A stretch of 64,000 bases of DNA from positions 40,610,001 to 40,674,000 of the forward strand of contig NC_079171.1 of the NCBI RefSeq assembly GCF_947568905.1, read 5' to 3'. A program made the position numbers and the translations under genes. Below, piece after piece: positions 12,664-56,603 of the stretch. The DNA comes from Ostrea edulis (Eukaryota). A model generated the notes under the pieces. The model was not told the origin of the DNA, did not search any database, and was given only the letters and a program-made list of their open reading frames with translations. Within the stretch, counting starts at the first letter, position 1. Every line of letters starts with the position of its first letter.

Positions 12664-12824
12664 ACAACAAATGGATAGAGACATAATTAAGAAATACCAA
12701 GCAATTGACTCCCCCAGTTCCAGGAAAGGTAGGATGGCACTATAACATGACAATGAGAACGTGAACAGTGATTACCAAGAATAGGGACAATTTAGTCCAT
12801 CTTCAACCTGACTCCATTCATTAA
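12664..12824 (+). pseudogene. Orphan, inactivated last (cytoplasmic-tail) exon of an upstream paralog
   Basis: Aligns with 34564-34720: acceptor TTTCAG, then QQMDRDIIKKYQAIDSPSSRK..NVNSDYQE* versus [30 protein letters not shown]. It has in-frame stops, and no TM or EGF exons are recognisable upstream. Confidence 0.75.
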
Positions 12825-13567
12825 ACGATTTTCATATAGGGCCCAAATTGTTTTGAATAGTGTAACGGTATTATCGATGTCAAGTTCGAAAAGTATTTGG
12901 CAGGTTCCACATAGGGGAATTAATAAAATATGTTGATGCATATGAATAGCAATTCTGGATCATTGATCCAATGCGCATTTCAATTCAACTTTATTCAGAT
13001 GAAATGAAATTACTTTTTTTTTTTTTTTTTTTAGAACAGACTAATTGTGAATTAAACCCAGTTATTGTGTACGTGACTAAATGTTTAAATGTTTAAACTG
13101 TCGACAATAGCAGGCAACGTACCATCTTGACTTAAAGTCAGGTTTTAAGATTCTAGCTACATGAAACATATGTTACACACATTTTGGCTGCGAGAAGGGG
13201 GATATGAATATCTTGCAACTCTATGTACTTGTCTGTACAAGGACACCATGGATGTTCCCAATGTCTTGCGCAGTTTAGGTAAGCGGATCTAAGTTGATAA
13301 TGTATAGATTTTTAAAGGGATCCAATGCAGTGATACAGAGCTATACATAATTATTTTCATTCACCTCTCCTTTGGGCTATCATCTTAAATTTCTACTGAT
13401 CAATTAGTAATTTACTGCCCTTTAAACCAGTAGATATGAAGACGACTAGCCCAAATTCGATATTTGATAATAATGAAACGTTTCCGTGATTCGGCCTAAT
13501 ATTATGTTTATTCAAACTGGAATCAACACCATGTTTGAAAAACGTCGTCATTGTACTATTCTCATTC

Positions 13568-13826
13568 ATGGGGATCAGGGTTAGAATAGGTCCTCAGTAC
13601 CCCTTGCTTGTCGTAAGAGCCGACTAAATGGGACTGCCCTTCGGATGAGACCGCAAAAACTGAGGTCCTGTGTCACAGCAGGTGTGACACGATAAAGATC
13701 CTTCCCTGCTCAATGGTCATAAGCGCCAAACATAGGCCTACATTTTGCAGCCATTCACCGGCAGTGGTGCCGTCTCCATATGAGTGAAATATTGTTGGGA
13801 GGGACGTAAAACAATACTCAATCAAT
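13568..13826 (+). mobile_element. SINE-like repeat family 3 (no tRNA head; central and 3' region shared with family 2)
   Basis: ggggatcagggttagaatagg..cttgtcgtaagag.cgactaa..cggatgagaccgcaaaaac.gaggtcc.gtgtcacagcagg..caatcaat. Other copies at 37360-37627 and 43146-43400. The central block resembles my recollection of the Deu/Nin SINE domain (unverified). Confidence 0.7.
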
Positions 13827-14611
13827 TATTCAGTCTAGGAAAATAATTTGTTATCTTCATTTTTGTCACCTATAGAAGTGTAGCATCACAGAATCACAGT
13901 CGTTTCACAAACTTGACAGATAAAGCTAAGAAACGCACAGCTGAAATTTGAGTTCTAAGATATAATCACTTGGTTTAGAGGAAATATCCGATGATTGCAC
14001 ATTGTATATACACCACTTAAGATACCTTGTGAAAATATATACATTGTGTTACTTAATAGTACAACAGAAGAGAAATATAGAAACTAGTTTGCATTCGATG
14101 AAAAGAACGAATGTTGGGAGGACTGCCAATAAAAACATAATTTTAGAGCTATTTGGAGTCGGAGATTTAAGTTAAAACTCGTTTCATTCCTTGTGACTTT
14201 TATTAGGGGACGGTATAGTATAAAACCTTTCTATTATATCTACCGACAAAAATACCGGTTTCTGTGACCTATTACATTGTCTTGTATCATCAATGATATA
14301 ATCAATTGCCATTGGGTTAGTTGAAGTGTGTCACATAGATTTTGACTAAAGAGGATGTTTAAAATATGCATAAGCCTGATTCCAAAATAAAATAAATTCA
14401 TGAAATAAACAGTCAATTGATCGATGAATAAATGCAGCGAGCATTGTTCAAAATGGTGTTAGGGTGGGGTGGCTTACTTTAACGGTACATTAAGTTAAAT
14501 TTGTTACCGATTTTGTATATGTAGGGATATCCCACACTTTTTATCTGTACATATTATACATGGATAGGAAACTTATCAGATTCAAAACTTAATGTGAAGC
14601 ATTCTATAGTA

Positions 14612-14890
14612 TAAAACTTATACGGTACCAATTTTGATGCACCAGATGCGCATTTTGAAAAATAATGTCTCTTCAGTAATGCTCAGCCGAAATGTTTGAA
14701 ATCCGAAATAACAATGAAGTTTTAGAGCTATTATAGCCAAAAACAGCGTGCCAAAAACGTGGAGTCAAATTCGTCTAAAGATAAGAGCTATGCATGAGGA
14801 AGATAATCCTTAATTTTGAAATGAATTTCTAAATTTTATAAGAGCAATTAAATATACATCCGTATTTTCAAGCTAGTAACGAAGTACATG
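14612..14890 (-). mobile_element. Second copy of the hammerhead-bearing repeat, ~400 bp upstream of paralog A exon 1
   Basis: Collinear with 19100-19380. Confidence 0.7.
14636..14684 (-). ncRNA. Hammerhead ribozyme copy with core mutation
   Basis: Same sequence, but GAAA is AAAA (G12A) and helix II is disrupted. Confidence 0.6.
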
Positions 14891-15289
14891 TATCCTTGCT
14901 TGACGGGTTCTAACAATATAAGTTGATTGCAATTTACAACAAACATATCTTGAATTTACCTCATATCTTATTACTCTGTCGGAATGACAGCATCCTTGAT
15001 TAGCTTTGCATTATCAAACATACTCAACAAAATACTCAATCATTCATTTCCTCTTAGATACACAGGTATGCATGACACAACACATATATTACCTCATACC
15101 TTAAAGCAAAGATAGTGGTTCAGTCTGTATATCAACTAGAGTCGACATCATTTTGTGTCATGCACTTTCATATGTTTATAATTAATAATTTAAACACATG
15201 TTAATAAACTGGCGTATCATTTGTCGTGGCGCTGCACTTCATTTTTTAAAATTAAACTTCCTTGTCCATTTTGTATGACGGTCACCATC

Positions 15290-18200
15290 ATGGTTTCAAT
15301 ATATCTGCTGTTGATTTTCTGTGTATTTTCCTATGCGTACGGTAAGGACATTTCTATTTATATGTATTCATGGTCCAATTTCAATAAGTTGTACTTTTTA
15401 GACGATATTGTATACGTATTATGTTTCAGAGAATTGAACATAAGGTAATCATTCAACTTTCGGTGTCTTAAAATGAAACATGATATTGTTGAAGAAATAG
15501 GGGGAATGATCATTATGACTTAGGGACGGTGATTCAGACAGTGCCACAAAATAAGTGTAAAATGGCTATATAGTCTTCACAACAGTGAGGTGAGTGAGAG
15601 ACAAGCATAACTAAATCAAAGAAATGCAATTCGAACATCTGAGCATAAATCTGATAACTTGTAGAACAAATTTCCACGACCTACGTGAAACAGGAAAGAG
15701 TTGAAAACTGCAATCACGTGTGAAGATACATTTCATATAAAAGCCAATATATTTCCAATTATAAATTTGGAAATACTTATACCAAATCTAAAAAAAAATC
15801 ACAATTAGAAAATATAAATACTATTTTTAGAATTCCTACATATAGATATATACAAGAATCCCTCCCTAAAATGTATAATCAATTCAGTCGACGAGATTAG
15901 AAATTTTTTTTAAACAATTCCATTCAAATAAAGCATAGTTTAGGTCCAGTTATCAATTAAAAAATGACAACCCATGCAATTTGATTTACACACTAAGAAG
16001 GAAAAGAAGGTTAGCATGATAAATATCATGATATAAAACATATTTTCTTCTTTATTCATTGAGGGCGCATAAAACAATCATATCACTCATATCATTTACA
16101 CACTGAAACATTCTGCACCGTTACACAAAAGGTCACTCATGTATCAGTACTTATTCAAACTATCTTATGCAGCTGTGGTATATTCATTAACTTAATTTTC
16201 AAACAAAAAATATACAATATCGGTAAAAACAGAAAGTAACCGGGAGGGGTGTATAAATATCCGAATAAGATAACGTTATTAACAAACGCACACACTTGGT
16301 ATGAGAAACACAAATATATTATGCTATACATGTATGCACATGCATAACCCCATTAGAATAAGACAACCTTGGAATCATCTAGATACTCATGATCCTACAT
16401 ATACTGTGAAAAGCTTTAGGCATAATTCGTTTGGAATAAAACATCCATTGCTAAAATTTACAATCAAATAGGCAGTCTAAACACAACCCGACATATGTTA
16501 TGAAATACTTAAGGTATAACCCGGAATAAAACTTCTTTGGTAAAATTATCGATTTCAATCACACACATTTGTAACAGATAATCATTAGCTTGTTCGACTC
16601 AAGCAATGTTTAAACACATATATTGGTATACTTATTTGTATTACTTTTTTCGGAATGACACAACACCCTCCGTAGGCTTCGCATTATCAAACATACTCGA
16701 CAGAATACACTGACAATTCATTTTACCATAGCAATAAGAACACAACACATATCATCTGTTACACGAGAGTACAAATTAGACAATTCTCGACATTTTATCT
16801 AAACATGACACTCCACCTATTGACAAGTTAAAATTGATACCTAATATAAACTTTAGTTGACTAAACTACGAATCAATATTGATAAGTACAAACATTCATT
16901 TGCCGAATAATTTTTTTTTCTTTATGCCGCTTCAAATATGATTTTATGTCTTTGTGATAATTTTCGAAATTCGAGAATGAGTGTATTAAAGGAAATTTAG
17001 GTCGATTCCGCATAGTGAAAATAACAAACTTGTATTGAGAGCTGAATTGATTGCGAATACATGGCGTTTGTTTCCGTGTTGATGATGAATGGGGCCACTT
17101 ACACGTTCCTAAATAGTGATATACGGAACTGAGCGTAAATTCCTGAGTTGCAAACGTTTTGTGAAGTTCCTGTATAAAATTGGCAATGAATTCACTTCAT
17201 TGATAACTTGTCGATGTATTACAAATATCAAATGTTGTAAGCGATTGATATAAATCATTGGTTACACTTAAAGCGTTCTTCTTTCTGATCGGAAGTGCGC
17301 ATGGATACTTTGAAAATATATTCACAGCAGCTGTAAACTCTTGTGAGAATATATCCAGGTGGTAGGAAGTTTGTCGTATAAAACCATTCCCATACTTCAA
17401 ATGGTGCATATGGAATAAGGAGTGTCGCAATGTGTGTCTTTGTTACGTTTTGTGTACGTTTTCTTTTTCTTTTTTTTTTTTTACAATGATTGTACGATTT
17501 AAGTATATGTAGATTAAGGCTTTATCGACATCAAAATCATACATTCAGTTTTTTTTCCATCCACTACTGTGACGATAACGAAATAATATATTTCCCAAGA
17601 TTTAATGTATTTTAACTGTGTATGGCCATATTGACCCCACACTATGTCCTGGACCCTAAACCTGAGTTCCATGATTTACACAAAATAGGTAGAAAGCTTC
17701 ATGAGCATCATAACTATGTATTTAATTTTTCTCATCCATCGCATAAAACTGTTCCATTGAGCGTTTTTCTTACGTTTTTTGAAGAAGCCATAACAATTCC
17801 ATACAAGTCTATTTTTGAACATCTGAATATACATTGAATTCTATGATTATGGATGTTGCCAATGAGATGTTCTTTACGCCACCATGGGTTATTGATGATA
17901 TACCTTCCGAATCATGCTGCCAGTTCCTTAAGCTCAAATGTTTAAATTAACGAGGATATACCGTCAACATAAGGAATATTTTTCACCATAAAGGCATCAA
18001 AGAGTTTAGTTGTGTAATCTAACTTATTTTAAATTCAAGTATACTCGGGTATGTTAAGACAGGTCATGCTTCATTTATGCACGTAAACTGCATAATTTTT
18101 AAAGTCTGTCTTACACAGATAGAGGGAGCTACTAACTCTTAGAAACTATTTTGGTTGTTTACATGAGAACCTTTTGTATCATAACAACATGACAAACATA

Positions 18201-24200: not shown

Positions 24201-24250
<50 letters not shown>

Positions 24251-27200: not shown

Positions 27201-30200
27201 GTTTTTTCCACTGTTTCATTAGAATATAGATATAATCTATTGTTAAATCTGTTGAACTTTTAATTCGCATACTGGAGATCAAACTGACAACCCTACAATG
27301 GGGTATAACAATATATAACAGTTTCTAGAGTAGAAAGTAGAAAAAGATCTTCTTAAATTGGTTACTGCGTTATATAATGAATTGTTCCTAGTGTACATAG
27401 TGGATGTAATAATATTCAAGAAAAGATTAAATTATACTTCCCTTAACAGAAATAGCGTCTCGGAGTACGATTTTGATCCAAGAATTTCCACCCAATTCCT
27501 TATTTCGAGGGAAATACATCCACTAGACTGTGAACATGTAGTGTAATAAGCGAGAGTATACACATCTAAGCTAACGAACCCCACTAGTCCATAATTGTTG
27601 TCCACTTCTGTATCTGCACTTGATTTGTGAACGGCAATGAGTTTTATCGTGACTGATGTATAAATACACTATACATGCAAGTTTTTCCATTCTTCACGAT
27701 ATAATTCATAGTAATATAATACTTCAACAATACCATTACTAATTTCACTTTATTCCTGATAAAATGTTGCTCTATCATTTACAAAGAATATCAAGATCAC
27801 GAATACAAGTTTAATTAAGAGCTAGAGGTGAACAATGTTGATTTCGTATAAACATTATTCATTATATTCGATATGGTCACAATGTACGATTATTTTAGAT
27901 ATATAAGGAATGAATAACATTTCGTTTTTAGCGTCGTGTATTTAACCGAGTTTTACTGTAACGTGCCCTTGAGGAAACCGTATAACTGAAGATTAAATGT
28001 ATGCCTTTGTATATGTGATCATCGAATATTTGTTTTCATTTTCTACAGAAAACATTGCCCTCAACAAACCGGCATGGCAACTTCATCAATATGGAGAGGA
28101 CGCCAAATCCGATGCGAGTAATGCTGTAGATGGACTCAAATCTGACCTTCGCGCCTGGGGAGGACAGTGTATCGTATCGGCTAATTATCAACAGATAACC
28201 ACATGGAGAGTGGACCTAGAGGACATCCTCAGTATACATCACATTACCATTCATTACAGGACGGACAATGCTGCATGGGGTTTGTTGTTTCTACATTTTA
28301 CATATTCCACGAGATGTAACTTGATATTAAAGTAGGAATTTCCGCTATTTTGTTATAAACATTGAAATCATCGTATATGTATTATTGATATTTCAGGTGA
28401 AGAAAATCACTATACTAGAAGATTTTTGGGGTTTTCGTTATATGTATCAAACACAACCGACAGAACAGAGGGAGAATTGTGTTTCCACGACACAAACTAC
28501 ACAAGAGACACCATACCCGCCATCCTCAACGTCACGTGTCCAGTTCACGGGCAATACGTCATTTACTACAACGAAAGACTACCTGGAGTTACCTACCCTG
28601 ATGGTTATAGTGCCCATGCATTTAATGAACTCTGTGAAGTAGAGGTTTATGGTATGTTTGAATACTTTACGATTTCATTGAGATATAACTAGTACATGTT
28701 GATTAAACTGTAATTAGTGACCACTAATTACAGTTTAATACGAAGACAGATGCAGCTTTGCATGTAAAAAATGTTGTGTGCCTAAATTCATAATTAAGTA
28801 TTTGGGCATTTTATTTTCAATAAACGTTGAATTAATGATTTTCGTTTCTGTCTTGTGTACGAAGAAGTTTTATTAACATTTTAAATTTTAGTTTTAAAAA
28901 AAATCTTAAATATGCATATAATGGTTAAAATTAGTTCTGAAACAATATAGTTTTCTATATTACATATGAGCCCTATTTTCTTCAAACAAATCTACATTTG
29001 GTTTTTAATGTTGATATAATTAAACAGTCTCCTAATTTTTATCAAATAGCAAAATTTTACTGTCCGGCTCAACATCAAATTCACTCAGTTCGTTTGAACG
29101 TAAATGTATAAAACAAAATAAAATATTTTCAAAAGAAACATATACATTCTGTATTTTCAATACTAATTGTTTTAGATATTATTATTTGTAATTAACACAA
29201 TGCAAGCTATCATTTCGTCAAATGCTGTCTGACGTGTTTCATACCGATTGTTAGACCTTTTTAAAATGGTGTTTACGGTTCTTTGCTTTTGATTTTGTCA
29301 ATACCCCCATACACTTTAAAAATGATACATGAGTGTGTGGTCTTTAAGTGTTTAATAAATGCGTCTCTTTATTTTAAAGGATGTCCCAGCTCTGGGTTTT
29401 ACGGAGAAGGCTGTTCTCTCCCGTGTCCAGATATCAACTGTAGATATTGTAACATAGAGACGGGGGCGTGTCAGGGGTGTAAACCTGGATACAAAGGTCA
29501 CCGATGTGAACAAGGTATGGTATTACCGAGAAATAAATGTATAGTGTCATCCAAATATTATAAATATTATAGTCGCGTATCTGTGCAAACACTGTATTGT
29601 AAGTCGTTGGTATTAATATGAAAACTTTTGAATTACGTACCTTAACGGATACACTTACATAAACTTCATTTTATATCATATAATGCAAATGAATCTTTTT
29701 TACAAAATGTCTGGAAGCAAAAACGCAGCAATATTATATAAAGAATAACTACTTGCTCATATATATTGATAAAAGAAAAACTAAACCAAATTTCGTTAAT
29801 ATTGCTAGTGGGATAATTCTCGACGAAAAGGTGGTAAACAGGGTTCCGTGAAAGCCCTATTTTACCGTTTGTTTTGGCACTTCAAACTTATTATGTAAAT
29901 ATGCTTAATTTTCACAATATCCACCTATATCTAATATATCTCTTAAGGAATAACACTTAAGAATTACTGATATTTGTTGTCGGAAACAAATCTCAATAAC
30001 TTAATACCAATAGCGATGGAGAAATGTTGCGATGTGTCAGGTTTGAATACGGGTGATCTGCTGGTTCAATCTATAAAACACCTCACCAGAGATTAAATAA
30101 GGTAGAGGTAAACTTTCGACCTGTTTTGTTTCATTTATTGTCTTCTTGTTACATTTGGCGCAACGACGGATTACTTGCAGCTGGAAAATGAAGCATTTTT

Positions 30201-32353
30201 CTTTGCATATTATGCTACTACCCATTAACTAATGATACTCGCTGTTTTTGTTTTGTTTTTGGTTTTTTTTTATCAAAGAAAAACTGGAGAACATGTACGA
30301 CATAATCAGGCTGAATTACATAATCATATGGAATGGTACACTAATTGTGTTGACTTTTGTGTTGTTTTTGGAAGAATGTGATGCCAAAAAGTATGGTGAA
30401 GGTTGTCAGTATGAATGTGGGAAATGTAAAGACATGGAACAGTGTCATCATAAAAACGGGATGTGTTTAAAGGGATGTGAGCCAGGTTTCAAGGAAGGAA
30501 AATGTGTAGAACGTAAGTAATAGTATGCTCTCTACAAATAATGCTGGACGAAATTTTGTTTTGTACTAAGTTTTTGACTTTATGTTCTTCATAAGCATCG
30601 ATTTAGTTTTAGTTTTACTTCTAAGTGTGCAGGTGTAGAGAAACTTTTCTAAAAGTATGCTTATCTTCACAACATAATCATAGCGTCACCTTTGAGAAAG
30701 TTTTTCCCCGAGGGTCATAGAAAACACAAGTTTTTCCTTAAGGATGGATAGTTATATAGGTTTTTTGTAAATAATTAGTCAATGTTTACACCACCCAATA
30801 GGGTTCCGAAAATACAGGAGTCCTTATAGTTTATGTAATTGATGTCCCTTTTATTCCTAAGATACAAATGGGAACAAAAATATGGTAACGCAGGAGGGAC
30901 GCAGACTTATAACACCTAAAATATACATAAATGATTGACTATTAAAGCTGCACATAAATTACTTTTAATCTTTTTGCAAATATTTCACTCCCATGTTGTG
31001 ATAAGGATAGGGTTATGTATTTCGTATGAAATACATTTTCTTTCATTCTCAAATATCAAGTCTTTGATACTTAGGGAGCCAGGCTTTGTACAATGTACTG
31101 TTGAAGGAAAACGTTACTATTGCTTTTTTTAACAGAATGTGACAGTCGCAAATATGGCGTGAAATGCCAACAGAGTTGTGGATACTGTTTAAATTTCGAA
31201 CAGTGTCATCATATTAATGGGACATGTTTGAATGGATGTGATCCGGGACACCAGGGATTAACCTGTAACGAAAGTAAGTTAGCGCCATTCATCATGGACA
31301 TTGTCTGCTGTAAGATTATATTCGCTATAAGATTCTTTATCATTATCGTTTGTTTTACAGTATTTGTACAACTTCACTGTAATGTGAAGTTGAAGTTCAC
31401 TGCAATTGCAATGTGGTTTTATAAAACAAACAAAAATCATATAAAATGTTTACCCTCCTCTGATTTCATAGAGGGGGGGGGGGTCTTCCTTTGAACAAGT
31501 CACACGATGTGCGTTGTATTTTCCATTTCCCATGATAAACTAAGAATGAACATATACATGTAATAGTAATGTGCACAGCTAATTCCTAGACATCTTGGAT
31601 GTGAAAAGGTCACTGTTATGAAGCAGTGACGTTGTGTATGGAGATGATGGTGCATGTGAAGGCAATGTGTTTCAATGAACGTAATATACGTAATTCTATG
31701 GATGTATCAGCTCAGTGTGTGCAAATCAAGAAAAGTGTTTTTTCGTGGAAATTAAAATGTAACTAGGCCTACATATATGTACTATCTTCAGTTTTCTCTT
31801 ATTTCCAAGCTTTAAACCAACAGTTGTACATCTATCTATTCAACAGTAAATCGTTTGTTCGTCAGTAAATAAGCAATGAGTTGTTGCATATGCAACTGCT
31901 AAGTATGAAAAAGTCCAAACTTTTCAATGAAAAAACCCAATTGATGACGTCTCTGATTTTTGAACAACTGACATAGTCATTGAATTCAGTTAACCAATCA
32001 TCTAATAAACCCTGTCAATAATTAATAATTGAAAGTAGGGCAAACTCGGTCTTCATGAAAAACAAAAAGTAGAATCACGTGTGTAGAAGGAGCAAGCACC
32101 TCCAATCGCCTGGACACACAGTAGTAAAGTAATCAGCATGTAAAAGCGGCCTAATATTGGTATGGAATACATCAGGTATGTTGTAGGAGTAAACATCACC
32201 TTTTGGTGGGTCACACCTGGCTTTTATTCTCTATCCTGGTCATGTGACCGCAGTGATCCGTATTAAAAAGACGTTTGTAAGTAATTAAGTAAAGGTGTAA
32301 CAAATGGAATGAAGCACAGTAGACGGAATCCATTGTGGACATAAGTTATATTT

Positions 32354-32407
<54 letters not shown>

Positions 32408-37904: not shown

Positions 37905-38378
37905 ATATGTCTCACAACGGCGGATATGACCGGCAGACAGGGGGTGCTTAGTCCTCGTAGGCACCTGATCCCTCCTCTGGGGTTCGTGTTTGCCCAACTC
38001 TCTATTTTGTATTGCTTATAGGAGTTATGAGATTCAACAGTCTCGATTGAAGTCAGCATTTCGCAAATTCTATGGTCGTTATAATGATCTAGTTTGTCAA
38101 TACAACCTATCATTGGGTCAAATGTTGTCTAACATGTTTCATAACCGATCGTTAGGCCGTTCTTGGCACACTGATTTTGACTACGGATAACTCCGTTTAC
38201 CTGATCAGGATATAGGGCACACGTTGGGTGAGACCGGTCCACAGGGAATTCTTACTCCTCCTAGGCACCCGATCCCACCTCTGTTGTATCCAAGGGTCCG
38301 TGTTTGCCCAACTGTCTATTTTGTATCGCTTACATGAGTTATGAGATTGGGCTCTGTTCGTTATATTCGCCCTTCATA
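37905..38378 (+). mobile_element. Rearranged tandem 3' fragments of the Penelope-like element
   Basis: [31 protein letters not shown], with two copies of the tail motif cttactcctcctaggcacc.gatccc. Confidence 0.8.
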
Positions 38379-39514
38379 TCACACAAACAACTAACAGCCA
38401 AATGACGTTGAAACAAAGATCACTCAATGTCATTTGTAAGGTTAGGGTCACTCGTAATATAAACTCCCATCATTTCAAAAATATTTAAACATTTATTGAT
38501 CTTTTGGACCAGGGTATATTAAGGGAACTTAATCCCTATCCCAAGGAATATGTGTTATCAATTATGATTAATTTCTGATAAGTTCCGGAGATATGAACTC
38601 CGATGGAAAGACAAACGGACGGACAGACAGGACAGCAACTACATACTCCCCTGAAAAATGTTTATTAGAGGAACCAGTAAGTTGGAATATTATTTTTTAT
38701 TATCAATAAAGTATGTTTAAAAATATATGGAACCCCCGCGGTGGTCTAAATGATAGAGAATTTGCCCTGCATGCGGAAAGCCGGAGTTCGAATCCCGGCC
38801 ACGACAAATCGAAGTCGTTAAAACAGGTAATGACAGTTCCATCGCCATACGGTCGGCATCAGTTCCTTGCAGATGACCTTAGAAACGGGTGGGACAGTAG
38901 AGTTGGCATGCTAACGAACCCAGAGAGAAGTGCATAGCTTGGGGTCGAATTTACTACCAAAGAATAAAGGTGAAGAACTCTAAATATAGGGTACCCACGT
39001 TAGCCTATGTAAAAGCAATACAATAATTTATATTAAATTATATTTTGTATTCTAATATATTCTTACATAATCACTCTACATTATCACCAAAGTTCATCCT
39101 GAAATTCCCTATACTTCCCAAGATATCCAAAGTACGGACGGTTTTACAAATTTCAGTGAATTGGAGTTATTACGCACTTCAATTATAAATTGGGGTAAGA
39201 AATTCATTTTAGAAATGATATCTTATGCTGTACATTTATATGTAATAGCTTGCTGAAATGCTCAAACATTCTGTTTAGTCGTATATTGTCAAGGCCCAGC
39301 TAAAAGTCGACCACGAAATAATAGGCATTTTTCCGAATTAATTTCTGCATATCGTGGGAAATGAATAATTTACGGTACGGACTGTCATGATAGAGGTCAT
39401 AACTTTTTTTTTAAATACCCCGGTGCATTGAAAACTCTTAAAAATTGCGTATTACAGAAATCACGTTCAGCTCCAGTTATTGAACTTCCTTGTTCAGTTT
39501 GTACGTCGGTCACC

Positions 39515-42500
39515 ATGATGGTTTCAATTTATCTCCTGTTGATTATACTTATGTGTTCCTATGCATACGGTAAGAACACTTCTTTTCATATGTATTCACG
39601 AGCATTTACAATAGGCTGCAAGAGATACTAATTTGTATAAAAAATATTATTGTTACTCTATTTTGAGAAGAAAAAAAAGAAGGTAATCCAAGCTTTCCCA
39701 ACGATAAATCAATAGACATTGTAAGTTCATCTCACAACGTTTCACAATCATCCTACTTTGACAAAACCCGATTCAACCGATGTCCATGCATTTAACTTTC
39801 TTAACGATTGTGTATACATACCATCTTTTGAAACATGGTAATATATTGGTGTTGAACTCAGCCAACCATAACTTTGAGATATGAATGTAGTGAATGTGAA
39901 ATTTAAATGAATTAAAAGAAACCTGTCCCATAAAACTTGCAGAATGTTGTATCTGTGCTGCATGAACAGGTGGTAATCTATACCTAATGTAGTCATACCG
40001 ATCATGAAATCATAATAGAAGAGGATGAGTGTCGTAAGATATGGATAAGCGTCGTACAAATAATATACCCTTTCTATCATTTGCTTGAGGAAAAGTGAAT
40101 ATGATGACCTTTATTTTACTTTTAATGCTGATATATCATTAAAAACACTGAGACTCTTACAGACAAGATGTATTCTAATTCACATCACAGCTAAATTCTA
40201 AAGCACCCATCATCAGCAATTAATGTTTTCGATTTGTTACTTGATTTCTAAGAATATATAAGTGTGAACAAGTTTCATCAACCAATGTCAGTTAACATAC
40301 AGGAATATTAGCAGCATCAGAAAAAAATCTGATGAGATCAATTCATTTCTGAATACACGGATTCAATATATGTTACTGGCGCTAAATAAAGATAACACGA
40401 ACGGCTTGGAACTAATATTTTTGCATTTTCATATATGATAATTTATTGATAACTACGTTTACCTGATATGGGATATGGGCTCACGGCGGGTTTGACCGGT
40501 CAACAGGGGATGCTTACTCCTCCTAGGCACCTGATCCCACCTCTGGTGTGTCCAGGGGTCCGTGTTTGCCCAACTATCTATTTTGTATTGCTTGTAGGAG
40601 TTATGAGATTGATCACTGTTCGTTATCTTCACCTTGCATTGTACGTCACATCTACTTCATACCTAAGTATTGAGACTTATATCAAATCAACGGCAGACGA
40701 TTATTTTTATCTTTTTTTTTACATTGTGTGGTTGTCGGCACGCGGGTACGTTGAGACAGGTTAGGATTTTTTTTATGGGATAAAATCCGCGAAACAATGT
40801 TACGTCATAATTGAAATAAGTATATCACTAAGTATATATTAAATTCCGATTTTATTTTTTATTTAAGTTTTATTGATGCATAAAATAAACCATGCAGCTA
40901 CTAAGATCCAACGAAATTCTACACTGCTGTTGTGTAATTTCTGTCTGATCGATATGAAAGTAAACTGATGACGTTATGACTATACATCGAGTGACGTTGA
41001 CACATGCAAGGAATGTGTTTATGTGTGCCATGCAAATATCGACGAAATGTAGAGAATTTGAAATATATGACATGGTATATAAGAAATACATATGTGAAAC
41101 GCTGAGAATTTATTGATATTAAGAAGGTATGTTGATATCACTCATTGACAACTTTGTTTAACGGAGAAAACATTCCATTTAGCATGTCGATCCGATTTTC
41201 CTCTGTCACAGACGGAAATAAAACTGCAAAAGTAGCACATTAGCCCGCATACTTTTAGAGACTTTTTATACACCGTTTGAAAGGTAATAAATTTATGTAC
41301 ACGGCAATTACTGATGGAATCCTCTGTTAAGAAAACTTTTAAAGAAAACTACATAGCATCATGCAAAATGTAAAACATGAGCTAGATGGTTTCGTGTTTA
41401 AATGTTCAATAGCTATTTCTTATTCAAAGTGGTAGGATTCTATCAGTAATTCTGATATACTATGGGTATTTTACCGTCATTATCGCCAGTTAGACCAATG
41501 TTTAAATCTTGGGATAATGTGCTACTTTTACATTTTATATTAAGGTACCTCCATGATATATTTATAACATTCATGCAATGACGTCATACGGAAGTGCATG
41601 TTTGTCATGTTGTTATGATACAAAATGTTCTCATGTAAACAGCCAAAATAGTTTATAAGAGTTAGTAGCTACCTCTCTCTATGTAAGACATATTTTAAAA
41701 ATTATGCAGTTTACCTGCATAAATGAAGCATGACCTGTTTTAACATACCCGCTGAGTCTTTTTATACCAATGTAACGACATTGTTGAACTCGGAAATTAT
41801 ATAAATACCGATATCTTCTGATTCTTAAACAGTATGATCGGTTTAAAAGTCCCCGAACTGTTCTACTGTCCCAATTCCACGGTAAACGAACGGTGAACGA
41901 ACAGGAAGATGGTAAAGTAGAATGTTTCCGGGACGGACTGTAACCTGTACATAATTGTAAAACGGATCTGATTTACGATATTATTGAAATGTGCATCATG
42001 AAACTTCATTGGTTGTATTATCTTCAATATGTACGTTATATATTTACTATTTGTTTTGACGCAAGCTCAATTAAACCCATTAACATTTGCTTACCGTATA
42101 TAATCGCTATAAGTAAGATTTCTGAGAGTTGAAATTTGGTCCGAAAATCTGTGTTCTAAGAAGGTTAGCATTTTTCTGGACGGTGTATTGTATAGGATTT
42201 TTCCATCAACTCCGTATTCAGACGATTATCATGTTTAAACACATTAAATTCTTTATGTATTTTAAAAATATGCATAAAGTACAAGTACTTACATATTTTA
42301 ATTATTTTATGTATCTTAAATATATATTATGGAGGTTGATTTGTTCAAAAAATGAATAAATAGCAGCAATGTCCCCAAAATATCGTTTGAAACGGGGTGA
42401 CAACATTAAAGCAATGATTTGAAATTACATAAAAAATTATATTGATTTATAAACAAATCAATGGCAAATCCTTCCAAAATAGCCGAATAATATACAACCG

Positions 42501-45500
42501 ATTTATATGCGAGTATACACGGCAATCACTCTCCTTAGAATGTAAGGTTATATGTGTTTTGGGCGAGTAAGCATCCCCTATCGACCGGTCATACCCGTCG
42601 AAAACTCTATATCTCAATCGGGTATGCATACTAATTCATTGATAAAGTCAGTATGCAAAGAGCAGTCTTAATTAGTATGAAACATGTCAGACAGCATTTT
42701 ACCCAGTGATTGTATTGGTAAATTATATCGTTGTGTAAGCGCGAGGACATGCATTTTTCCAATTTTCAATCTGCTCTACCCTACGAAAGTTCTTACGTTA
42801 CTATCATCATTCATTTCCGTTACTATCATTCTCAATGTGTTTTCAACGACGAATTTTCTGTTCAGATGAGCCGTATAAAAAATAAAATAACACCTGATCG
42901 TAATTGTTGCTAGTGTATGATATTTCTTACCTACATATCATTTGCAAATAAACAATACAAATAGATATGATAAGTAAATGTGGGATTTCCGGAATTTCCT
43001 TCCGCCATCTTGGGATGATAGTAACGATCGTTTCTATCATCAGTTTAATACCTGTGATAAAGACTAATACCACTACTTTTTACTCACCCTCAAACAGGGT
43101 CACGTTTTAAGACTTATTAATATATGTAACATCAACACGATATTACCCGTGGGAATCCGAGTATACATGGCTTACTTACGTAAGATGTAACTATATTGGG
43201 ATGTTTATCGGATGAGACCGCAAAAATAGAGGTCCACTTTCACAGCAAATGTGGAAAGATAAAGATCCATCTAAGTTCAAAGGCCGTAAGCGCCGAGGAT
43301 AGGCCTAATTTTCAGCCCTTCACCAGCAATGGTGTCGTCTCCATATGGGTAAGTATTTTCGAGTGGAACGTTAAAAAATATCCAATCAAATTCATTCAAT
43401 GAATTGCTGGCAGGGAATTTGAACCCACATTCCATGTCAAAATATAATTATCCCTCTATATATGTATGTCATCGTTTCTGCGTTGCGGAAGGGCAGTACT
43501 GGCAGGACATATGTTATTCAGTGGCAACGACGTGGAGCTTGCTGGATTATGCTTCCCCATGTCCTTGTTTCTATCGCAATGATTACGCTCTCAATATGCA
43601 TAAACTAGGTGAATACTAGCTACACACAGTAAACATGTTGATCGCCGTCGTTTTGATTCATGGAGTCACACATTTATGTTTAAATTTGAAATTGTGCATT
43701 CCTGCAAGAATATAACACTTAGTTGTCGCTGTTGGATAAGATGTCCAAATCGAGTAAATATCATTGAGGTGCGAATTTGTACATACAAAATTGATGTGTG
43801 CGATGTGAAAGTAGAATTTGAGTTGATGGTGGCATGACAACTTGCGTCATTGCTAATGCGGATTGCCTTGCAAAAATTAGTGCTAGAAATAGGGTCTCCC
43901 ATGAGTATCTTTTTCACAGCTAGATATGCGCTGGTACACAACTAAAGATGAGACGAGTTTGTGACCGGTTACACACATTATCTGGAGAACATCGTTATTA
44001 CGTCATGGGCGGGGCTAGTTGTATTATTTGAAATGAATATATATAATTCTTTAATAACATTTCTGAAAATGCTAAAACTAAAAGATGGATCTAATTGTTT
44101 TAAAATAATGTTTATTTTACGAAGTGGTTAAGTATACAGGTGTAGCTCTATCGAAGCCATTTTGTATCCTTTCTATTCTTGGCAGGAAACATGGCTTTTT
44201 GTCCAATCCAATGCCTATGTTTTGATCTTGAATATTTTGTACAGATAACCTTGCCCTCAGAAAACCGACATGGCAACTTCATCAATATGGACCAGGTGAC
44301 GACCGATTCAATGCAAGCAATGCTGTTGATGGACTCAAATCTGACCTCAGCGCCTGGGGAGGTCAATGTGTCATATCGAATAGCAATGAACTGACAGCCA
44401 CATGGAGAGTGGACTTACAGGACATTCTCAGTATACGTCACATTACCATTTATTACAGGACAGACAATGTTGCATGGGGTTTGTTGTTTCTATGTATTAC
44501 ACATTGCACATGATAGTGAAGTAAATATAACCGCTTTATTGCATAAAAGTTACAGCCACGATATATGTGCTGTTATTATTTCAGGTACAACATATTGCTT
44601 TTCTGGATGATTAGAATAGTTATGATCAATCTGTTATTGGCATTTTATTTTATTTTTTTATTTAAAAAGATATTACGTTGTTTATGTTTTATATTTAAGG
44701 ATCAACATATGGCTATTCTGGAAGATTTTTGGGGTTTTCATTATACATATCAAACACAACCGACAGAACACAGGGAGAATTGTGCTTTCACGACACAAAC
44801 TTCACAAGGGATACTATACCCGCCGTCCTTAACGTCACTTGTCTAGTTCACGGACAATACGTTATTTACTACAATGAAAGACTACAAGGAGTGACCTACC
44901 CTGATGACTATAGTAACTACGCATTTAATGAGCTCTGTGAGGTAGAAGTCTATGGTATGTTTGAATATGTCATCATTAAATTAAGGTAAAACTGGTTCGT
45001 CTCATTTGCAAGCCGCAGTAATACACGTTCAATGCAAAGAGAAATAGAACAACATTATGAACATGATTAAAGGACTAAGACCATGTTTAGCTATATCGGC
45101 CCTGTGTTGTGTTAAAAAATAAAGTAGAATGAATTGAAATAAAATTGTTATACAATGTAATTTGATAATACAGTAAAACTTTGATATAGCGAATTTCTGC
45201 GGACACTCTATAAAAATTCGTTATACATTTATAGCGAATTCATAAATCAAATATAACGAATTCGTTATAAAAGTGATTTGTTCTACTTGTATATCAGTTT
45301 TACAAGAAAACGGCAATCAATATACTTGCGTTTGTATTATCTCTAGGAGAAATTAAGCCTGTATATTTTCGAGAAAAAACATTTTTATACAAAAAATATA
45401 CACATTAATTGATATATGATAACTTACCTTAATGGATTACTAAGTCATGCAAGAACATGTAAAGAGAAAAATTTCAACAAAACTATGCACAATGCATACA

Positions 45501-51500: not shown

Positions 51501-54500
51501 ACATCACATACTTTTCACAATTAATCTTCATCAAAATAAAAAAAACACACCATAAAACTAAGATTGTGACATCATGAACATTCCACCGCATGTTCCAATT
51601 AGTAATATACCTTAAATTTCAGACACGGCATCTCTTTGATGTCTAAGGATAACGTCGAAATCTTAATAACGGATATCCGACCACGACAAGCGTTGTAATT
51701 TTAAAATATCATCACTACTACGGCCTTGACTGAGTGCTAAACAAATGTTAGCATTTGTTGTGTGTCACGTATAAAAAGCAAATGATATAGAAAACAAAGT
51801 TCACAGCAGGTGTGACCGGTCAAAAGGGGCTGCTTGCTCATCTTAGTCAGCTAATCCCACCTCCGGTGTGTTGAGGGTTCCTTGTTTTCGTTACCCTGAT
51901 CTTTGTATCCTTTATATAATTTCGGCGTATGGAGAAAAAAGTGCCACCATGTGACTATCAGATTTTAAACATCATACCAATGAGACGGTACATAAGAAAT
52001 GGAGCTTGTGAAACCCTAGTAAACGCCGTCGTAACATCTACATTTGATTATGGAAACTGTCTATATTTTGGAGTTGGAAGAAATTGGACCGGCTGCAACG
52101 GGTGCAGAATACTGCTCCTCGTCTAGTTACGAGGTCGTCGATTCGGAACACATATTTCCAATTCTGGTGAAAACTCAATTGGTTTCCACTTCATTGCCGA
52201 CCCCAAATCAAGATTTTGCCTTATACATATCGTTCCTCTCCAGGATCTTGGCTGTCATACAGTTTTTGAAATGAATACAAGCCATGTTGACCATTACGTT
52301 TAGAATCGAAGTCGCAACTTTTGGTTTCAAATGTCAGGTCAAAAAACCCTGGTAAACATATCTTGAAATAAAAAAAAAAACAAAAACAAAAACAAAATCA
52401 AAAAAAAAAAAAAATATTCGCTATCGATCTTATTACAATTATTCATTTCGATGATTTTAGGGATATATAAAATTGTATGTCATATTTTCATTTAATTTCA
52501 TTTAATTGTGTTTCATCGTTGTACAGTAAAACTCGAATATAGCGAACACGGATATAGCGAAATTACGGCTATAGCAAAAGTGAAAACGATTTCCCCGGCA
52601 AATTCTTTATATATTCTATATAAAAAGCGCGTCTATAACGAACACGGATATAGCGAATTTACGGATATAACGAAGTAAATTCCTATTCCCCTTGAATTAA
52701 AAATGAACGTAAAATCACCTTTTATAACGAATTTATTTTTTTCATTTTAAACTCTCTGTGATTTTTAACAATTGTTTTCCATTGACATAAAGGATCCACA
52801 CTTATTACAAAATTTCTGTTTGTATTTTTTCAAAAAAGGTTGTTAACGCAAAACAATACTTACACATACATTTAGGAAATATTTTGTCGGTATTATTTAC
52901 TATTCTCGTTAATTAAATTTGAAGTTTGATTGCATTTATTTTATCGAACACTCCTTTATTTGTGTAAAGCAACAAGTAAATTACAATTGCAATAGACTGT
53001 ACATGTGTGTATTTCGCAAAATGTTGTTGACATTTCTCTCTCGACATGTTCTTGCATGACTTAATAATCCATCAAGATAAATTATCATATATAAATCAAT
53101 GTGTATATTTCTTGTATAGAAATATTTCTTCTCGAAAATATATAGGCTTCATTTCTCTTAAAGACGATACAAACGCAAGTATATCGATTGCTGCTTTCTT
53201 ATATAACTGGTATATATGTAGAACAAATCAGTTTTATAACGAATTCGTTGTATTTTATTTATGAATTCGCTATAAACGTATAGCGAATTACGCTTATAGC
53301 GTTTTTGTAGAGGGTCCCCAGAAATTCGCTATATCAGAGTTTTACTGTGTTCCTCTTCGTACCCTGGTAAACCGAGTGTTTAGAGCATTGCGCTCAATAT
53401 CACACGGCCTCTCACCTTTATCGGCGCTGGTTCGAATCCCGCTCGCGCCAGTAAGTGAGAAAGTTCCCCAGTTACTTTCGGAAGGTCAGTGGTCTCTTCT
53501 CAGTTACATTGTATCTGAGTTCTCTCTTCCACCAATAAAATAACTGAAAAAGTGTTGAATGTGGCTACAGCATCAATCAATCAATCAATCAATCAACCGT
53601 AAAGCACCTTGGAGTAATTTATTTTTTGTATGGTGATATGTAAATTTCATTGTTATTATGATGAGTTTGTTCACTATTCAGTATCTTCCTTTCTTCAATC
53701 ATAATAATCAACATTTGAAATACGTGTTGCATTTGATCAGAAAGCCACCGTGGAAAACGTAGCACCATAGTTATCATCAAAACCATAAATGACACTTCAA
53801 TAGAGACATTCATCCGCTCTAATTCACCTCCACACTGTTCCGGTTTTTTTTCGTGCAAACCGATCATGCGTCAACCCGTGTAAACCATTTATCGCTCTTT
53901 GCAACCGTTCATCGTTCTGTTTAATTCATCAAGTGTTTCGTGTAAAGCATTCAACGTCAACTGTAAACTGCTTCATGCAATAGTTCCCCGTAATAGTCCT
54001 TTCGTTCAAGTGAAATATTCAAGCTACGTCCATGAAAATGTGCAGACCAAGCAACACCCCCTAACAAGAAATTACAGATCGTACCTTTACTATTTTATGT
54101 ATCTAAATGCATTTTCACGATGTGCGTATTTCTCTGAGAAAAATTCATAGAAAGAAAGAGCATTCATACCGTCTTATTGAATCATGATATCTAATGATCA
54201 ATACATTATGTTTGATCTGCACACGATTATTACGCAACAAAAAGGATAAAGTTTAGACTTTGATAGCCAGTCTTGTGCCGCTTTCCGAAACTCAATGTAG
54301 ATCCGTGTTATCATTGGCGTAACTAAGTTGAACTAACTTACGCAACAGTCTATGTTTTTTTTCTTCAGAAAACGGATGCAGAATTCAATTTGTAGAAATT
54401 TTCTAAGGCAATATTTTCCCAATAATATGTTTCCGTGGACTCAATATTCAATATTGAATGGTACGTTTATTTATTTTAAAGGATGTCCCAGTCCTGGATA

Positions 54501-55170
54501 TTATGGAACAGATTGTTCCCTCTCGTGTCCAGATGTCAACTGTAAATATTGTCACATAGAGACGGGGGCGTGTCAGGGATGTAACCCTGGGTACAAAGGT
54601 TATCGATGTGAACAAGGTATGATATTGTTTTCCAATGAATGTTTCGTGTCGTCCAAATTTGACAGTTACGAATCCGTGGAAATAATGTTTGGTAAACTAT
54701 TGGCTTAACATCTAAAGGACTACTTCATATTTTCCACACAAAACCCTAACTTTGATAACGCATACACGTTAAACTTTCGTTATGTTTCACTGCATATATT
54801 GTCTTCTTGTTATATGTACGTCTGGTGCAATGACAAGGAATATATGCAGCAATAAAAGCGAACTTTTCTATTTGTTTCTAGATTATTTTACGTTTCGCTA
54901 ACTAATCATATTCGTCATTATTGTTTTCTATCAATGAAACACTTGATAACATGTACTGCTTAATTATGCTGAACTACTTTCACACTATGCGGAACGATAT
55001 GCTATTTGTGTTAATTTTTTTTTAATTGGAAGAATGTGACGGCAGAAAGTATGGTGAAGGATGTCAGTATGAATGTGGGAAATGTAAAGACATGGTACAG
55101 TGTCATCACATAAACGGGACATGTTTAAACGAATGTGAACCAGGTTTCAAGGAAGGACGATGTGTAGAAC
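39515..55170 (+). CDS. Paralog B of the same receptor family, 5' part (signal, lectin domain, two EGF repeats); 3' end not found in window
   Basis: Exons 39515-39569 ([18 protein letters not shown]), 44245-44478 ([19 protein letters not shown]), 44700-44954 ([25 protein letters not shown]), 54482-54616 ([34 protein letters not shown]..), 55033-55170 ([18 protein letters not shown]..). All GT-AG, in frame, and collinear with exons 1-5 of paralog A. Confidence 0.85.
40455..40640 (+). mobile_element. 3' tail of the Penelope-like element in intron 1 of paralog B
   Basis: Near-identical to the reverse complement of 19596-19790. More decayed tails occur at ~32070-32330, ~42560-42770 and ~51800-51930, and an RT sliver at ~10440-10520. 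Confidence 0.8.
40738..41757. mobile_element. Second copy of the ~1-kb TIR element, intron 1 of paralog B, opposite orientation
   Basis: Collinear reverse complement of 18043-19031; ends gcgggtacgttgagacaggtta and tgacctgttttaacatacccgc. Confidence 0.7.
45171..45981. mobile_element. Tc1/pogo-type MITE, copy 1 (intron 3 of paralog B)
   Basis: Starts TA|CAGTAAAACT and ends TTTACTG, with subterminal tatagcgaa/ttcgctata repeats; ~810 bp. Confidence 0.8.
47560..48088. mobile_element. hAT-type MITE (~530 bp)
   Basis: TIRs CAGGACTAGGGT / ACCTTAGACCTG (10 of 12 match), dense subterminal gtaatg/cattac repeats, and flanking 8-mers gacagaat/gatataac that may be a decayed TSD (5 of 8). Confidence 0.55.
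49100..49560 (-). pseudogene. Possible hAT transposase N-terminal (TTF-type zinc finger) relic
   Basis: A stop-riddled frame contains [30 protein letters not shown], resembling the CxxC..GFxNWK pattern; short match only. Confidence 0.35.
52524..53347. mobile_element. Tc1/pogo-type MITE, copy 2, inverted relative to copy 1
   Basis: TA|CAGTAAAACTC ... GAGTTTTACTG. The internal sequence is the reverse-complement homolog of 45171-45981. Confidence 0.8.
53361..53596 (+). mobile_element. tRNA-derived SINE family 1, near full length
   Basis: ggttcgaatcccgctcgcgccagtaagtgagaaagttcc.. and a (CAAT)n tail. Truncated copies at ~23950-24081 (+) and ~56690-56771 (-). Confidence 0.8.
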
Positions 55171-55629
55171 GTAAGTAGCGATACATATATATGCGTTTTA
55201 CAAATAATGTTTGAAAAATATCGTTTTGCACTTCGCTACGTCGGGCAATAATTCAACATTTTCAGCTAAATTTGGAGAGAGTCGCCCAAGAAATAAGAAT
55301 AATCATAAGTAGTTATTCAGGCATAGTATCTTTGTTTCTTGGAAGTAATGTGATGATTGGTGAAGAATGATTTCAACCCGGAATTTTCCTCATTTCAATA
55401 AGATTAAAAGTAGATTGTTTTAATTGATATCCTTTTGTTCAGGTATCTCACCAGCTTTGATAAAATTCCTCACGAATAGAATGGCTCGAATCTCGAGTCT
55501 ATTTCCACTCTTCTGAAAAAAAACCCACTTACAAATCTTATCATCTGATCTCAGCACATACAGTAAAATGGACATGTTTTTATATCAAAGACCACGAACG
55601 CATAGAGAAAATCATAGTGCTTCTCTACA

Positions 55630-55962
55630 CCACTGCGGTGGCCTAGAGGTTAGAGAATTCGCCCTGCATGTGGAAGACCGGGGTTCAAATCGCGGTCGCG
55701 ACAGACCTTATTCGTTAAAACAGGTAGTTCCATAGCCAAACACTCAGCATCAGGTGTGAATATTACGGGTCTTCAGAAATGACCTTAAAAGCGGACATCC
55801 CGTGTCACAGTAGACATGGCATGCTTAAGAACCTTCACTCCTCAATGGATGTAAGCGACGAGCATACTATTAGGCCTAAAGTCACCGGTCTTGGTGACGT
55901 CTCTCTATGAGTGAAAGATTCTCGAGAGTGACTTTAAACAAGACACAATCAATCAATCAATC
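55630..55962 (+). mobile_element. tRNA-derived SINE family 2, full length
   Basis: gcggtggcctagaggttagag (A-box), ggggttcaaatc (B-box), central cccgtgtcacagtag..aagaacc, (CAAT)n tail. Partial copy at ~38735-38950. Confidence 0.8.
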
Positions 55963-56369
55963 TTGGGAAATGTAATTATAAGTAAGAGTGAATAGATATA
56001 CATTCTCTTAGAATACTAGGTAAGCACAGTACAAGTGCATATAGCAGGTGGCATCTAGTATGTCATCAACGTACATTATTGGAAACGCATACGATATGCT
56101 TCTGCCAATTAAAGAACAAACTTAAAACACTTAACAAATGCAATGTGATTAATGATTAATTAATCTAGTACAGTGTTGTAATACCAAGCCATGTGCATTG
56201 GCAGTCATTACCACAAACGCAAAAATCGCAAAGGGAATTTTGATTGCAAACTCTGAAACAAATTCAATTCTCCTGTTTTATTGGTTGTTGGTTTCTCTGT
56301 TTTATTTATTTGAAATTATTAACTATTTCACACTAATATTCATAAAGTTTTCGTTCTGTTTTTATATAG

Positions 56370-56603
56370 AAAACATAGCCTTACACAAACCAGCATGGCA
56401 ACGTAGTCAATTCATCCCAGGTAACGCGATATTCAATGCAAGTAATGCTGTGGATGGACTGAAATCTGACCTCAGCGCCTGGGGAGGACAGTGTGTCATA
56501 TCGAATAGTAATCAACAAACAGCAACATGGAGAGTGAACCTAGAGGACATCCTCAGTATCCGTCACATTACCATTTATTACAGGACGGACAATACTGCAT
56601 GGG
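56370..56603 (+). CDS. Third copy of the first lectin-domain exon (second lectin module of paralog B, or exon 2 of a paralog C)
   Basis: AG at 56368-56369, GT at 56604-56605, 234 nt, phase 1-1, open: [78 protein letters not shown]. The partner exon (RFLGFSLY..) is not seen before 64000. Confidence 0.8.

Follow-up and report, generated by a model that had tools for sequence, protein, structure and literature searches.

Draper signals through an ITAM (immunoreceptor tyrosine-based activation motif) that is read by a Syk-family kinase, and a fixed spacing of 8-9 residues between the two tyrosine motifs is the geometry recognized by the tandem SH2 domains of Syk-family kinases, whereas paired immunoreceptor tyrosine-based inhibitory motifs (ITIMs) usually lie about 20-30 residues apart. 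In oysters, ITAM-Syk-ERK signalling has been demonstrated for the unrelated receptor CgIgR (PMC6994640). Here we analyzed a 64,000-nucleotide stretch of Ostrea edulis chromosome OX387711.1 (40.610-40.674 Mb of assembly GCA_947568905.1; hereafter the window, position 1 being 40,610,001) and compared it with these systems. The window contains a pseudo-exon, a gene in full (gene 2) and the 5′ portion of another, longer one (gene 3), all belonging to a family of membrane receptors with an F-type-lectin-fold head, an EGF stalk and an ITAM-like tail. What is new here is that the same lectin-EGF ectodomain is also found on receptor tyrosine phosphatases.

Gene 2 occupies positions 15275-34720 of the forward strand (OX387711.1:40,625,275-40,644,720). 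The original prediction, made from the letters alone, described an intact 12-exon gene in a family of lectin-EGF-transmembrane receptors with paired tyrosine signalling motifs, and both the gene and this architecture are borne out, the encoded protein having a signal peptide, an F-type-lectin-fold domain, a stalk of eight-cysteine EGF repeats, a membrane-spanning segment and two tyrosine motifs in its tail. AG/GT is present at every junction, the joined frame is open for 596 codons, and the translation is identical, residue for residue, to the RefSeq protein named 'MEGF11' (P0166, 595 aa). Exon 1 (15275..15341; 22 codons plus 1 nt) provides the start codon and the signal peptide, P0166 residues 1-22, and ends at a GTAAGG donor. 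The first and second halves of the lectin domain are encoded by exon 2 (28049..28279; PDB 1K12 alignment E = 5.6e-6) and exon 3 (28397..28651), and the stalk by exons 4-10 (29380..33728), each of which corresponds to one 45-46-residue repeat with eight cysteines of the MEGF10/PEAR1 type (29380-29514, 30375-30512, 31136-31273, 32574-32714, 33097-33234, 33343-33480 and 33588-33728). Exon 11 (34369..34477) carries the transmembrane segment, and exon 12 (34564..34720) the 57-residue cytoplasmic tail, which ends YQEL-x9-YDSI-Y-stop. Phase is 1-1 for both lectin exons and all seven EGF exons; exon 11 ends in phase 2, its split codon being completed by exon 12. Exons 8 and 9, introns included, are an intragenic tandem duplicate (nucleotides 81% and protein 76% identical; ratio of nonsynonymous to synonymous substitution rates, dN/dS, 0.08), and exon-level duplication therefore lengthens the EGF stalk.

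The signal-peptide exon is positioned 12.7 kb upstream of the first lectin exon, across an intron filled with transposon fragments. It was placed at 15275 because a 120-nt block at 15251-15370, spanning the 5′ untranslated region (UTR), the ATG and the signal peptide, is 83% identical to the first-exon block of gene 3 (39479-39598), and because the encoded residues match P0166; a competing first-exon candidate at 26683-26755 was rejected on the same two grounds. The motif ACTTCCTTGT is observed upstream of the ATG in genes 2 and 3, and also ahead of the start of the family protein P0010 in a separate locus, L001. The shared 5′ block with this motif may represent a promoter or UTR element.

Gene 3 begins at 39515 and extends past the end of the window. 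Its exons had been taken for a 5-exon partial gene followed by an orphan lectin exon, an appearance that arises because the window ends inside the gene; they are in fact the first six exons of one RefSeq gene. All six are intact, with AG/GT borders and phase 1, and joined together they give residues 1-350 of P0152 ('MEGF10 isoform X2', 816 aa; the longest product of the gene has 947 aa). The remaining 466 residues have no match in the window. Exon 1 (39515..39569, at the recorded gene start) encodes the signal peptide, P0152 residues 1-18; exons 2-3 (44245..44954; 44245-44478 and 44700-44954) a complete F-type lectin domain; exons 4-5 (54482..55170; 54482-54616 and 55033-55170), preceded by a 9.5-kb intron, two EGF repeats; and exon 6 (56370..56603; residues 273-350) the first half of a second lectin domain, all on the forward strand and all in agreement with P0152. 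In isoform X2, exon 6 is spliced straight to an EGF exon beyond the window, and no partner exon for the second lectin half was found in 56604-64000; the 131-residue gap between the two isoforms equals one such second-half exon plus one EGF exon. The resulting order, lectin-EGF-EGF-lectin, is recurrent rather than a one-off, because 40 of the 185 lectin-bearing family proteins examined (P0001, P0005, P0151, P0153, P0159 and others) contain two to four complete lectin domains with EGF repeats between them.

The head domain was evaluated on whole database proteins and on a family profile, since single exons gave only sub-threshold Pfam matches and whole proteins reached F5_F8_type_C_2 marginally. 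The lectin domain of gene 2 alone matches eel agglutinin (1K12, E = 5.6e-6) and FBP32 in the PDB, and a profile built from 102 family lectin domains retrieved six PDB structures, all of them F-type lectins, including 3CQO (5e-12), 1K12 (4e-8), lectinolysin and pneumococcal SpX. An AlphaFold model calculated on the family alignment has a mean predicted local distance difference test score of 94, and its best Foldseek matches, 1K12 (E = 7e-12) and 3CQO, precede CBM32 modules and galactose oxidase. Thus the predicted fold and homology stand. The canonical fucose-binding residues, however, are gone, and sugar recognition is therefore putative. At the positions of the fucose triad of the eel agglutinin AAA (His52, Arg79 and Arg86) gene 2 has Val, Arg and Glu, so that only the first arginine is kept, and the vicinal Cys-Cys pair is replaced by Ala-Ala. 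A simple scan of 174 family lectin domains for the fucose motif H-x24-R-x-D-x4-R/K found the histidine in two, with 44 domains falling outside the scan pattern. Column entropies show that the framework and the Arg79 equivalent are conserved across the family, and that the most variable stretches (domain positions 15-27, 45-53 and 78-88) are those aligned to the pocket loops carrying His52 and Arg79-Arg86 of eel agglutinin. The head is an F-type lectin by descent and by fold, with a remodelled and diversified pocket.

The EGF exons gave weak matches to EGF_laminin, EGF_PEAR1L and related Pfam models, and no EMI domain was matched in P0166 or P0152 (Pfam scan, E ≤ 1). Beyond the membrane, the tail of gene 3, as read from P0152, ends YQEL-GELSSSSP-YDSI-Y, with a spacer of eight residues in place of the nine in gene 2. 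We surveyed 97 short-tailed transmembrane members of the family for the motif Yxx[LI]-x6-12-Yxx[LI]: it is present in 56 of them, compared with a mean of 0.9 and a maximum of 5 in shuffled tails. The spacer is eight residues in 41 tails and nine in 11, the first motif reads YQEL in 42, and in 39 the motif stops one residue short of the C-terminus; proteins of Ostrea, Crassostrea/Magallana and Saccostrea have it in common. The residue two positions before the first tyrosine varies (S 19, G 10, T 9, A 8, E 5 of 56). NPxY occurs in one of the 97 tails and in neither window gene, and N-x-x-Y-x-x-[LI] in 50. By its sequence motif, the tail is ITAM-like.

Searching with P0152 also retrieved many proteins labelled 'receptor-type tyrosine-protein phosphatase', 1100-1400 residues long, with the same N-terminal lectin domain and EGF repeats. 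Pfam identifies two phosphatase domains in them, the first with an intact VHCSAGIGRTG active site (HC(X)5R); the HC(X)5R motif was not found in the second. A lectin domain is combined with the protein tyrosine phosphatase (PTP) active-site signature in 27 protein clusters from at least five species. The lectin domain of one such protein, P0279, is the closest relative of the gene 2 lectin domain (77%). P0280 (phosphatase) is 71% identical to P0154 (ITAM) over 538 residues, and higher by eye over the N-terminal ~440, and P0279 is 62% identical to P0010 (ITAM) over 537 residues. The resemblance between the two types continues along most of the EGF stalk, as far as the repeats next to the membrane; their transmembrane segments differ. 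On a tree of the lectin domains the cytoplasmic types interleave. The tree requires 21 changes of type, of which well-supported branches force at least 15; O. edulis, C. virginica and Saccostrea each have supported pairs of an ITAM-type and a phosphatase-type sister; and a single phosphatase clade is rejected by the approximately unbiased test (log-likelihood difference 1176, p = 2.7e-6).

Both types are found along OX387711.1, all on the same strand: P0166 (ITAM, 40.625 Mb), P0152 (ITAM, 40.650 Mb), P0010 (ITAM, 41.278 Mb), P0157 (ITAM, 41.407 Mb), P0280 (phosphatase, 41.691-41.753 Mb), P0154 (ITAM, 41.766-41.801 Mb), P0279 (phosphatase, 41.811-41.878 Mb) and P0162 (ITAM, 5′-truncated, 42.160 Mb), in a cluster of at least 1.5 Mb. 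P0280, P0154 and P0279 follow one another with gaps of 10-13 kb (12.7 kb between P0280 and P0154), and an exon scan of the contiguous 208 kb around them found, for each unit, one pair of lectin exons and one type of cytoplasmic end. Alternative 3′ ends, produced through ITAM tail exons inside the phosphatase genes, were considered and rejected, as no such exon was found in L003 or L004, the loci scanned for it. Similar ectodomains are therefore attached to different signalling ends in neighbouring genes, and the analogy with vertebrate paired-receptor clusters drawn in the original prediction has gained support from an unexpected side. Further along the chromosome (L007, OX387711.1:42,149,794-42,180,517), P0162 starts within an intron and keeps the second lectin half only, inside a phosphatase gene model; nesting of one gene in another, 5′ exons in common or a chimeric model would account for this arrangement. 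The lectin-EGF-ITAM architecture and its phosphatase partners were not found described in the open full texts, which leave the subscription journals uncovered, and we provisionally regard the architecture and the pairing as undescribed before.

With modest confidence, we favor as the best explanation a tandem cluster of lectin-EGF-ITAM receptors that, with phosphatase-tailed partners, constitutes a paired activating/inhibitory system. The members are type-I membrane receptors with a signal peptide, at least one F-type-lectin-fold domain, an eight-cysteine EGF stalk, one transmembrane helix and a tail of ~57 residues. The lectin head is predicted to bind a putative, probably glycan, ligand through the pocket loops, the most variable positions of the family; ligand-driven clustering would allow a Src-family kinase to phosphorylate both tail tyrosines, and the tandem SH2 domains of oyster Syk would then dock, leading to phagocytosis or ERK signalling in hemocytes. 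The phosphatase-tailed partners, presumed to recognize the same ligands, would set the threshold or end the signal, and the inhibitory arm of such a paired system would then be a receptor phosphatase acting directly. Ligand binding by the pocket, phosphorylation of the ITAM, Syk docking and the opposing role of the phosphatase partners are thus all predicted steps. It is possible, though we hold it with less conviction than the pairing itself and would not call it probable, that the system evolved independently of vertebrates, one diversifying F-type-lectin/EGF ectodomain having been re-assorted between cis-ITAM and phosphatase tails.

An immune role is suggested by hemocyte expression of Crassostrea virginica homologues, rather than of the two O. 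edulis genes themselves. Among the rows listed from published hemocyte differential-expression tables, ITAM-type members include LOC111112849 (base mean 260, log2 fold change 2.72), LOC111112176 (67, 1.30), LOC111111957 (123, -1.20) and LOC111112174 (369, -1.76), and one member, LOC111115260 (295, -1.49), is of the phosphatase type. LOC111115260 and LOC111112174 are sisters on the lectin tree, and in these rows of the supplement both fold changes are negative and of similar size, with the two entries near each other. Transcripts of the 'MEGF10 family' also differ between Perkinsus-tolerant and susceptible oyster families (PMC9892467).

Several observations weigh against this explanation. The splicing and expression of genes 2 and 3 are those of RefSeq models only, and the phosphatase-type proteins come from computational predictions that include very long introns; some of these predictions may be chimeric, given that a 1179-aa phosphatase gene model encloses P0162 on its own strand. 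Both window genes are of the ITAM type, and the nearest mapped phosphatase partner is 1.1 Mb away. The spacer of gene 2, at nine residues, is one above the classical 6-8, and the S-x-Y-x-x-[LI] context of some members also fits an ITIM. The fucose triad is reduced to a single residue (V/R/E in gene 2) and its histidine is missing in nearly all members, and the head domain may bind no sugar at all. Finally, pairwise dN/dS values of 0.2-0.55 give no sign of positive selection, and presence/absence variation of gene 2 was not seen in four DNA runs.

The alternative with the strongest claim is that the family serves adhesion, tissue morphogenesis or gamete/self recognition rather than immunity, with phosphorylation and receptor phosphatases regulating contacts. 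In oysters, the best-known carrier of F-type lectin domains is sperm bindin, an extremely diverse gamete-recognition protein (PMC5712786), and the hemocyte paper groups the phosphatases under 'cell adhesion molecules'. Purifying selection (dN/dS 0.2-0.55) would fit a conserved endogenous ligand, and receptor phosphatases are classical regulators of adhesion. We nonetheless consider such a function rather unlikely, as several C. virginica members are expressed in hemocytes and, in the listed rows, differ between hemocyte types, the family's transcripts differ by Perkinsus tolerance, and hundreds of copies with genus-specific clades are typical of immune receptor families. A different assignment of the tail, as an ITIM pair or an inhibitory ITAM recruiting an SHP-type phosphatase, would make the short-tailed receptors themselves inhibitory. 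Both motifs in genes 2 and 3 read S-x-Y-x-x-[LI], the ITIM consensus, and among the family tails listed the second motif usually has serine at -2; this assignment is weakened because the -2 residue of the first tyrosine is not conserved, and it also sits poorly with the fixed spacer of 8-9, which has the Syk geometry rather than the wider separation of ITIM pairs, and with the acidic, ITAM-like residues ahead of the first tyrosine. We therefore regard it as unlikely.

The paired reading would also fail if the phosphatase-tailed partners were annotation chimeras, in which 5′ exons from dead or adjacent lectin-EGF genes had been misjoined to downstream phosphatase genes. Introns of 17 and 19.5 kb indeed separate the lectin exons of P0279 from its remaining exons, and at 42.16 Mb the 5′-truncated ITAM-type gene is enclosed by a phosphatase model. 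At each of the P0279 and P0280 loci, however, a single set of lectin exons is followed by EGF exons, by a transmembrane exon belonging to that gene and by the phosphatase exons, and no ITAM tail exon intervenes; the recurrence of the architecture across clusters and species, and the likeness of the two types through most of the stalk, also argue against an artefact, which we judge improbable. Least plausible, to the point that we give it hardly any weight, is the interpretation implied by the database names, that these are plain oyster orthologues of MEGF10, MEGF11, Draper or CED-1 that engulf apoptotic cells. The EGF repeats are of the same eight-cysteine type, with weak EGF_PEAR1L and laminin-EGF matches, and Draper, too, relies in its signalling on an ITAM and a kinase of the Syk family. 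Three features that define MEGF10/Draper were examined, however, and the EGF array alone was found, the EMI domain being undetected at the threshold used and NPxY confined to a single tail. The N-terminus is instead an F-type lectin domain, the 57-residue tail has no other similarity, and hundreds of paralogues in genus-specific clades argue against one-to-one orthology. The parallel that had been drawn with CED-1/Draper/MEGF10 is thus weakened: the family is most probably not orthologous to MEGF10/Draper, and the names 'MEGF10/11', 'draper-like' and 'CED-1-like', which automatic annotation applies just as had been anticipated, are resemblance labels.

The size and clustering of the family proved as expected, with hundreds of copies and clades restricted to one genus. 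The second lectin exon of gene 2, used as query, matched 746 cluster representatives (50% identity) at E ≤ 1e-3 and 447 at E ≤ 1e-10, and P0010, in a word search, matched 508 proteins at E ≤ 1e-20; the best 120 matches of each word search (P0010 and P0152) were all from ostreid oysters, two nameless entries aside. A separate clade of the lectin tree (support 97) comprises those O. edulis proteins that are nearest to the window genes, seven of the ITAM type and two of the phosphatase type, and indicates expansion or homogenisation after the genera split.

The dead tail exon postulated at 12664 (12664..12826, forward strand; unannotated in the record) is confirmed as a pseudo-exon. It starts directly after a CAG acceptor and contains three in-frame stops in its original frame, reading QQMDRDIIKKYQAIDSPSSRKGRMAL-stop-HDNENVNSDYQE-stop-GQFSPSST-stop. 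Its nucleotide alignment to the tail exon of gene 2 (34551-34722) scores 85, with a maximum of 33 in 200 shuffles, and the homology to the live ITAM tail exon spans from the retained acceptor through the stop codon. Its nearest relative is the tail of gene 3 (tblastn to P0152 residues 750-810, 52% identity, E = 4e-11). A proposed remnant of a transmembrane exon upstream of it (12441-12623) was rejected, having no support from nucleotide or protein alignment. For the family as a whole, this pseudo-exon and the clades confined to one genus together point to duplication and loss.

The rapid turnover that had been proposed is not visible inside the window: genes 2 and 3 are separated by a synonymous divergence (dS) of ~0.26-0.49, their dN/dS is 0.55 in the first lectin exon and lies at 0.22-0.32 in the second and in the EGF exons, and each of the four DNA runs contains gene 2. 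Presence or absence was evaluated on assembled contigs from four public O. edulis DNA runs of two studies. All four yielded contigs matching the introns of gene 2 with 0-2 differences, and one also contained a haplotype ~1-3% divergent. Apparent 4.5-kb deletion joints from ~29250 to 33750-33850 (for example, 29241/33754) were rejected, as they join two copies of the end of a very high-copy transposon, and higher summed depth over the gene 2 exons was not accepted as copy number, since it reflects paralogous contigs. The ends of the high-copy element lie at 29198-29253 and 33753-33900, where summed contig depth reaches 1e5-1e6 in every run and false deletion and strand-switch joints appear.

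Every exon of the original prediction is present at its predicted place with the implied boundaries, in one complete gene, one gene leaving the window and one pseudo-exon rather than in four units in four states; no further family remnants were found in the window when both strands were searched by nucleotide and protein alignment. As a whole, that interpretation is supported in part, for architecture, clustering and mislabelling, and is weakened or unsupported for turnover in the window, sugar binding and likeness to CED-1/Draper. The GC content of the window is ~35%. A retroelement with a weak RVT_1 reverse-transcriptase match lies at 19595-21005 on the reverse strand, and retroelement fragments at 24775-25265, 33753-34307, 38027-38379 and 40448-40639 are scattered among the cluster's introns and the DNA between its genes; a retroelement copy of 702 bp, 96% identical, is found in L001, the P0010 locus, 650 kb away on the same chromosome. 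A dispersed repeat of ~270 nt occurs in cluster spacers and introns, with copies 73-87% identical at 13569-13832, 37359-37628, 43210-43404 and 55781-55961 of the window and further copies at 351-619 and 29396-29604 of L001. A tandem array at 35810-36190, ~1.1 kb downstream of the gene 2 stop, consists of copies 93-95% identical at offsets of ~41/82/123/205 nt. An Rfam scan of the window at the gathering threshold matched nothing.

In oysters, hundreds of genes bear the names 'MEGF10/11', 'draper-like' or 'CED-1-like', and transcriptome studies interpret them as receptors for scavenging or efferocytosis. This large subfamily, at least, differs, being an F-type-lectin-headed receptor with a canonical-looking ITAM, and its annotation is corrected here. 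These results would also explain the joint rise and fall of 'Draper-family' and 'RPTP' (receptor-type protein tyrosine phosphatase) genes in oyster hemocyte data. If the two arms oppose one another, these would be paired activating/inhibitory receptors outside vertebrates, with a direct phosphatase in place of the ITIM, and each ligand would be sensed by hemocytes with two receptors at once, one activating and one that dephosphorylates directly. The cluster thereby offers comparative immunologists a concrete, testable system in commercial oysters affected by Bonamia, Perkinsus and herpesvirus disease.

Compared with Draper, CED-1, MEGF10 and Jedi-1 (PEAR1), the oyster receptors are likewise single-pass proteins with an eight-cysteine EGF stalk and tyrosine motifs in the tail, but have an F-type lectin N-terminus, a tail of ~57 residues and, in place of one or a few orthologues, lineage-specific paralogues in the hundreds. 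With the F-type lectins (AAA, 1K12; FBP32, 3CQO; oyster sperm bindin) the head shares fold and sequence homology, and its variable positions fall on the loops of the sugar pocket; it differs in being anchored to the membrane via EGF repeats, in keeping only the first arginine of the His-Arg-Arg triad and in having lost the vicinal cysteine pair. CgIgR of Crassostrea gigas, a hemocyte receptor with a cytoplasmic ITAM that recruits CgSyk and activates ERK and phagocytosis (PMC6994640), is an oyster parallel in signalling, yet is a single gene with five Ig domains, whereas the present family is large, tandem and built from lectin and EGF domains. The partner genes resemble the RPTPs CD45, CD148 and RPTP kappa/mu/T in having a transmembrane segment followed by two phosphatase domains, and are distinguished by an ectodomain of F-type lectin and EGF repeats, shared with the ITAM genes, in place of MAM, Ig or FN3 domains. 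Finally, like the vertebrate KIR, LILR, Ly49, SIRP and CD200R receptors, the oyster genes form tandem clusters in which near-identical ectodomains are carried on what would be opposite signalling ends, with repeated exchange between them. In the oyster, unlike in these vertebrate receptors, the activating motif lies in cis, with no adaptor such as DAP12; the ectodomain is composed of lectin and EGF domains rather than Ig or C-type lectin domains; and the presumed inhibitory arm, in a system whose outputs are likewise presumed to oppose each other, is a receptor tyrosine phosphatase rather than a phosphatase-recruiting ITIM.

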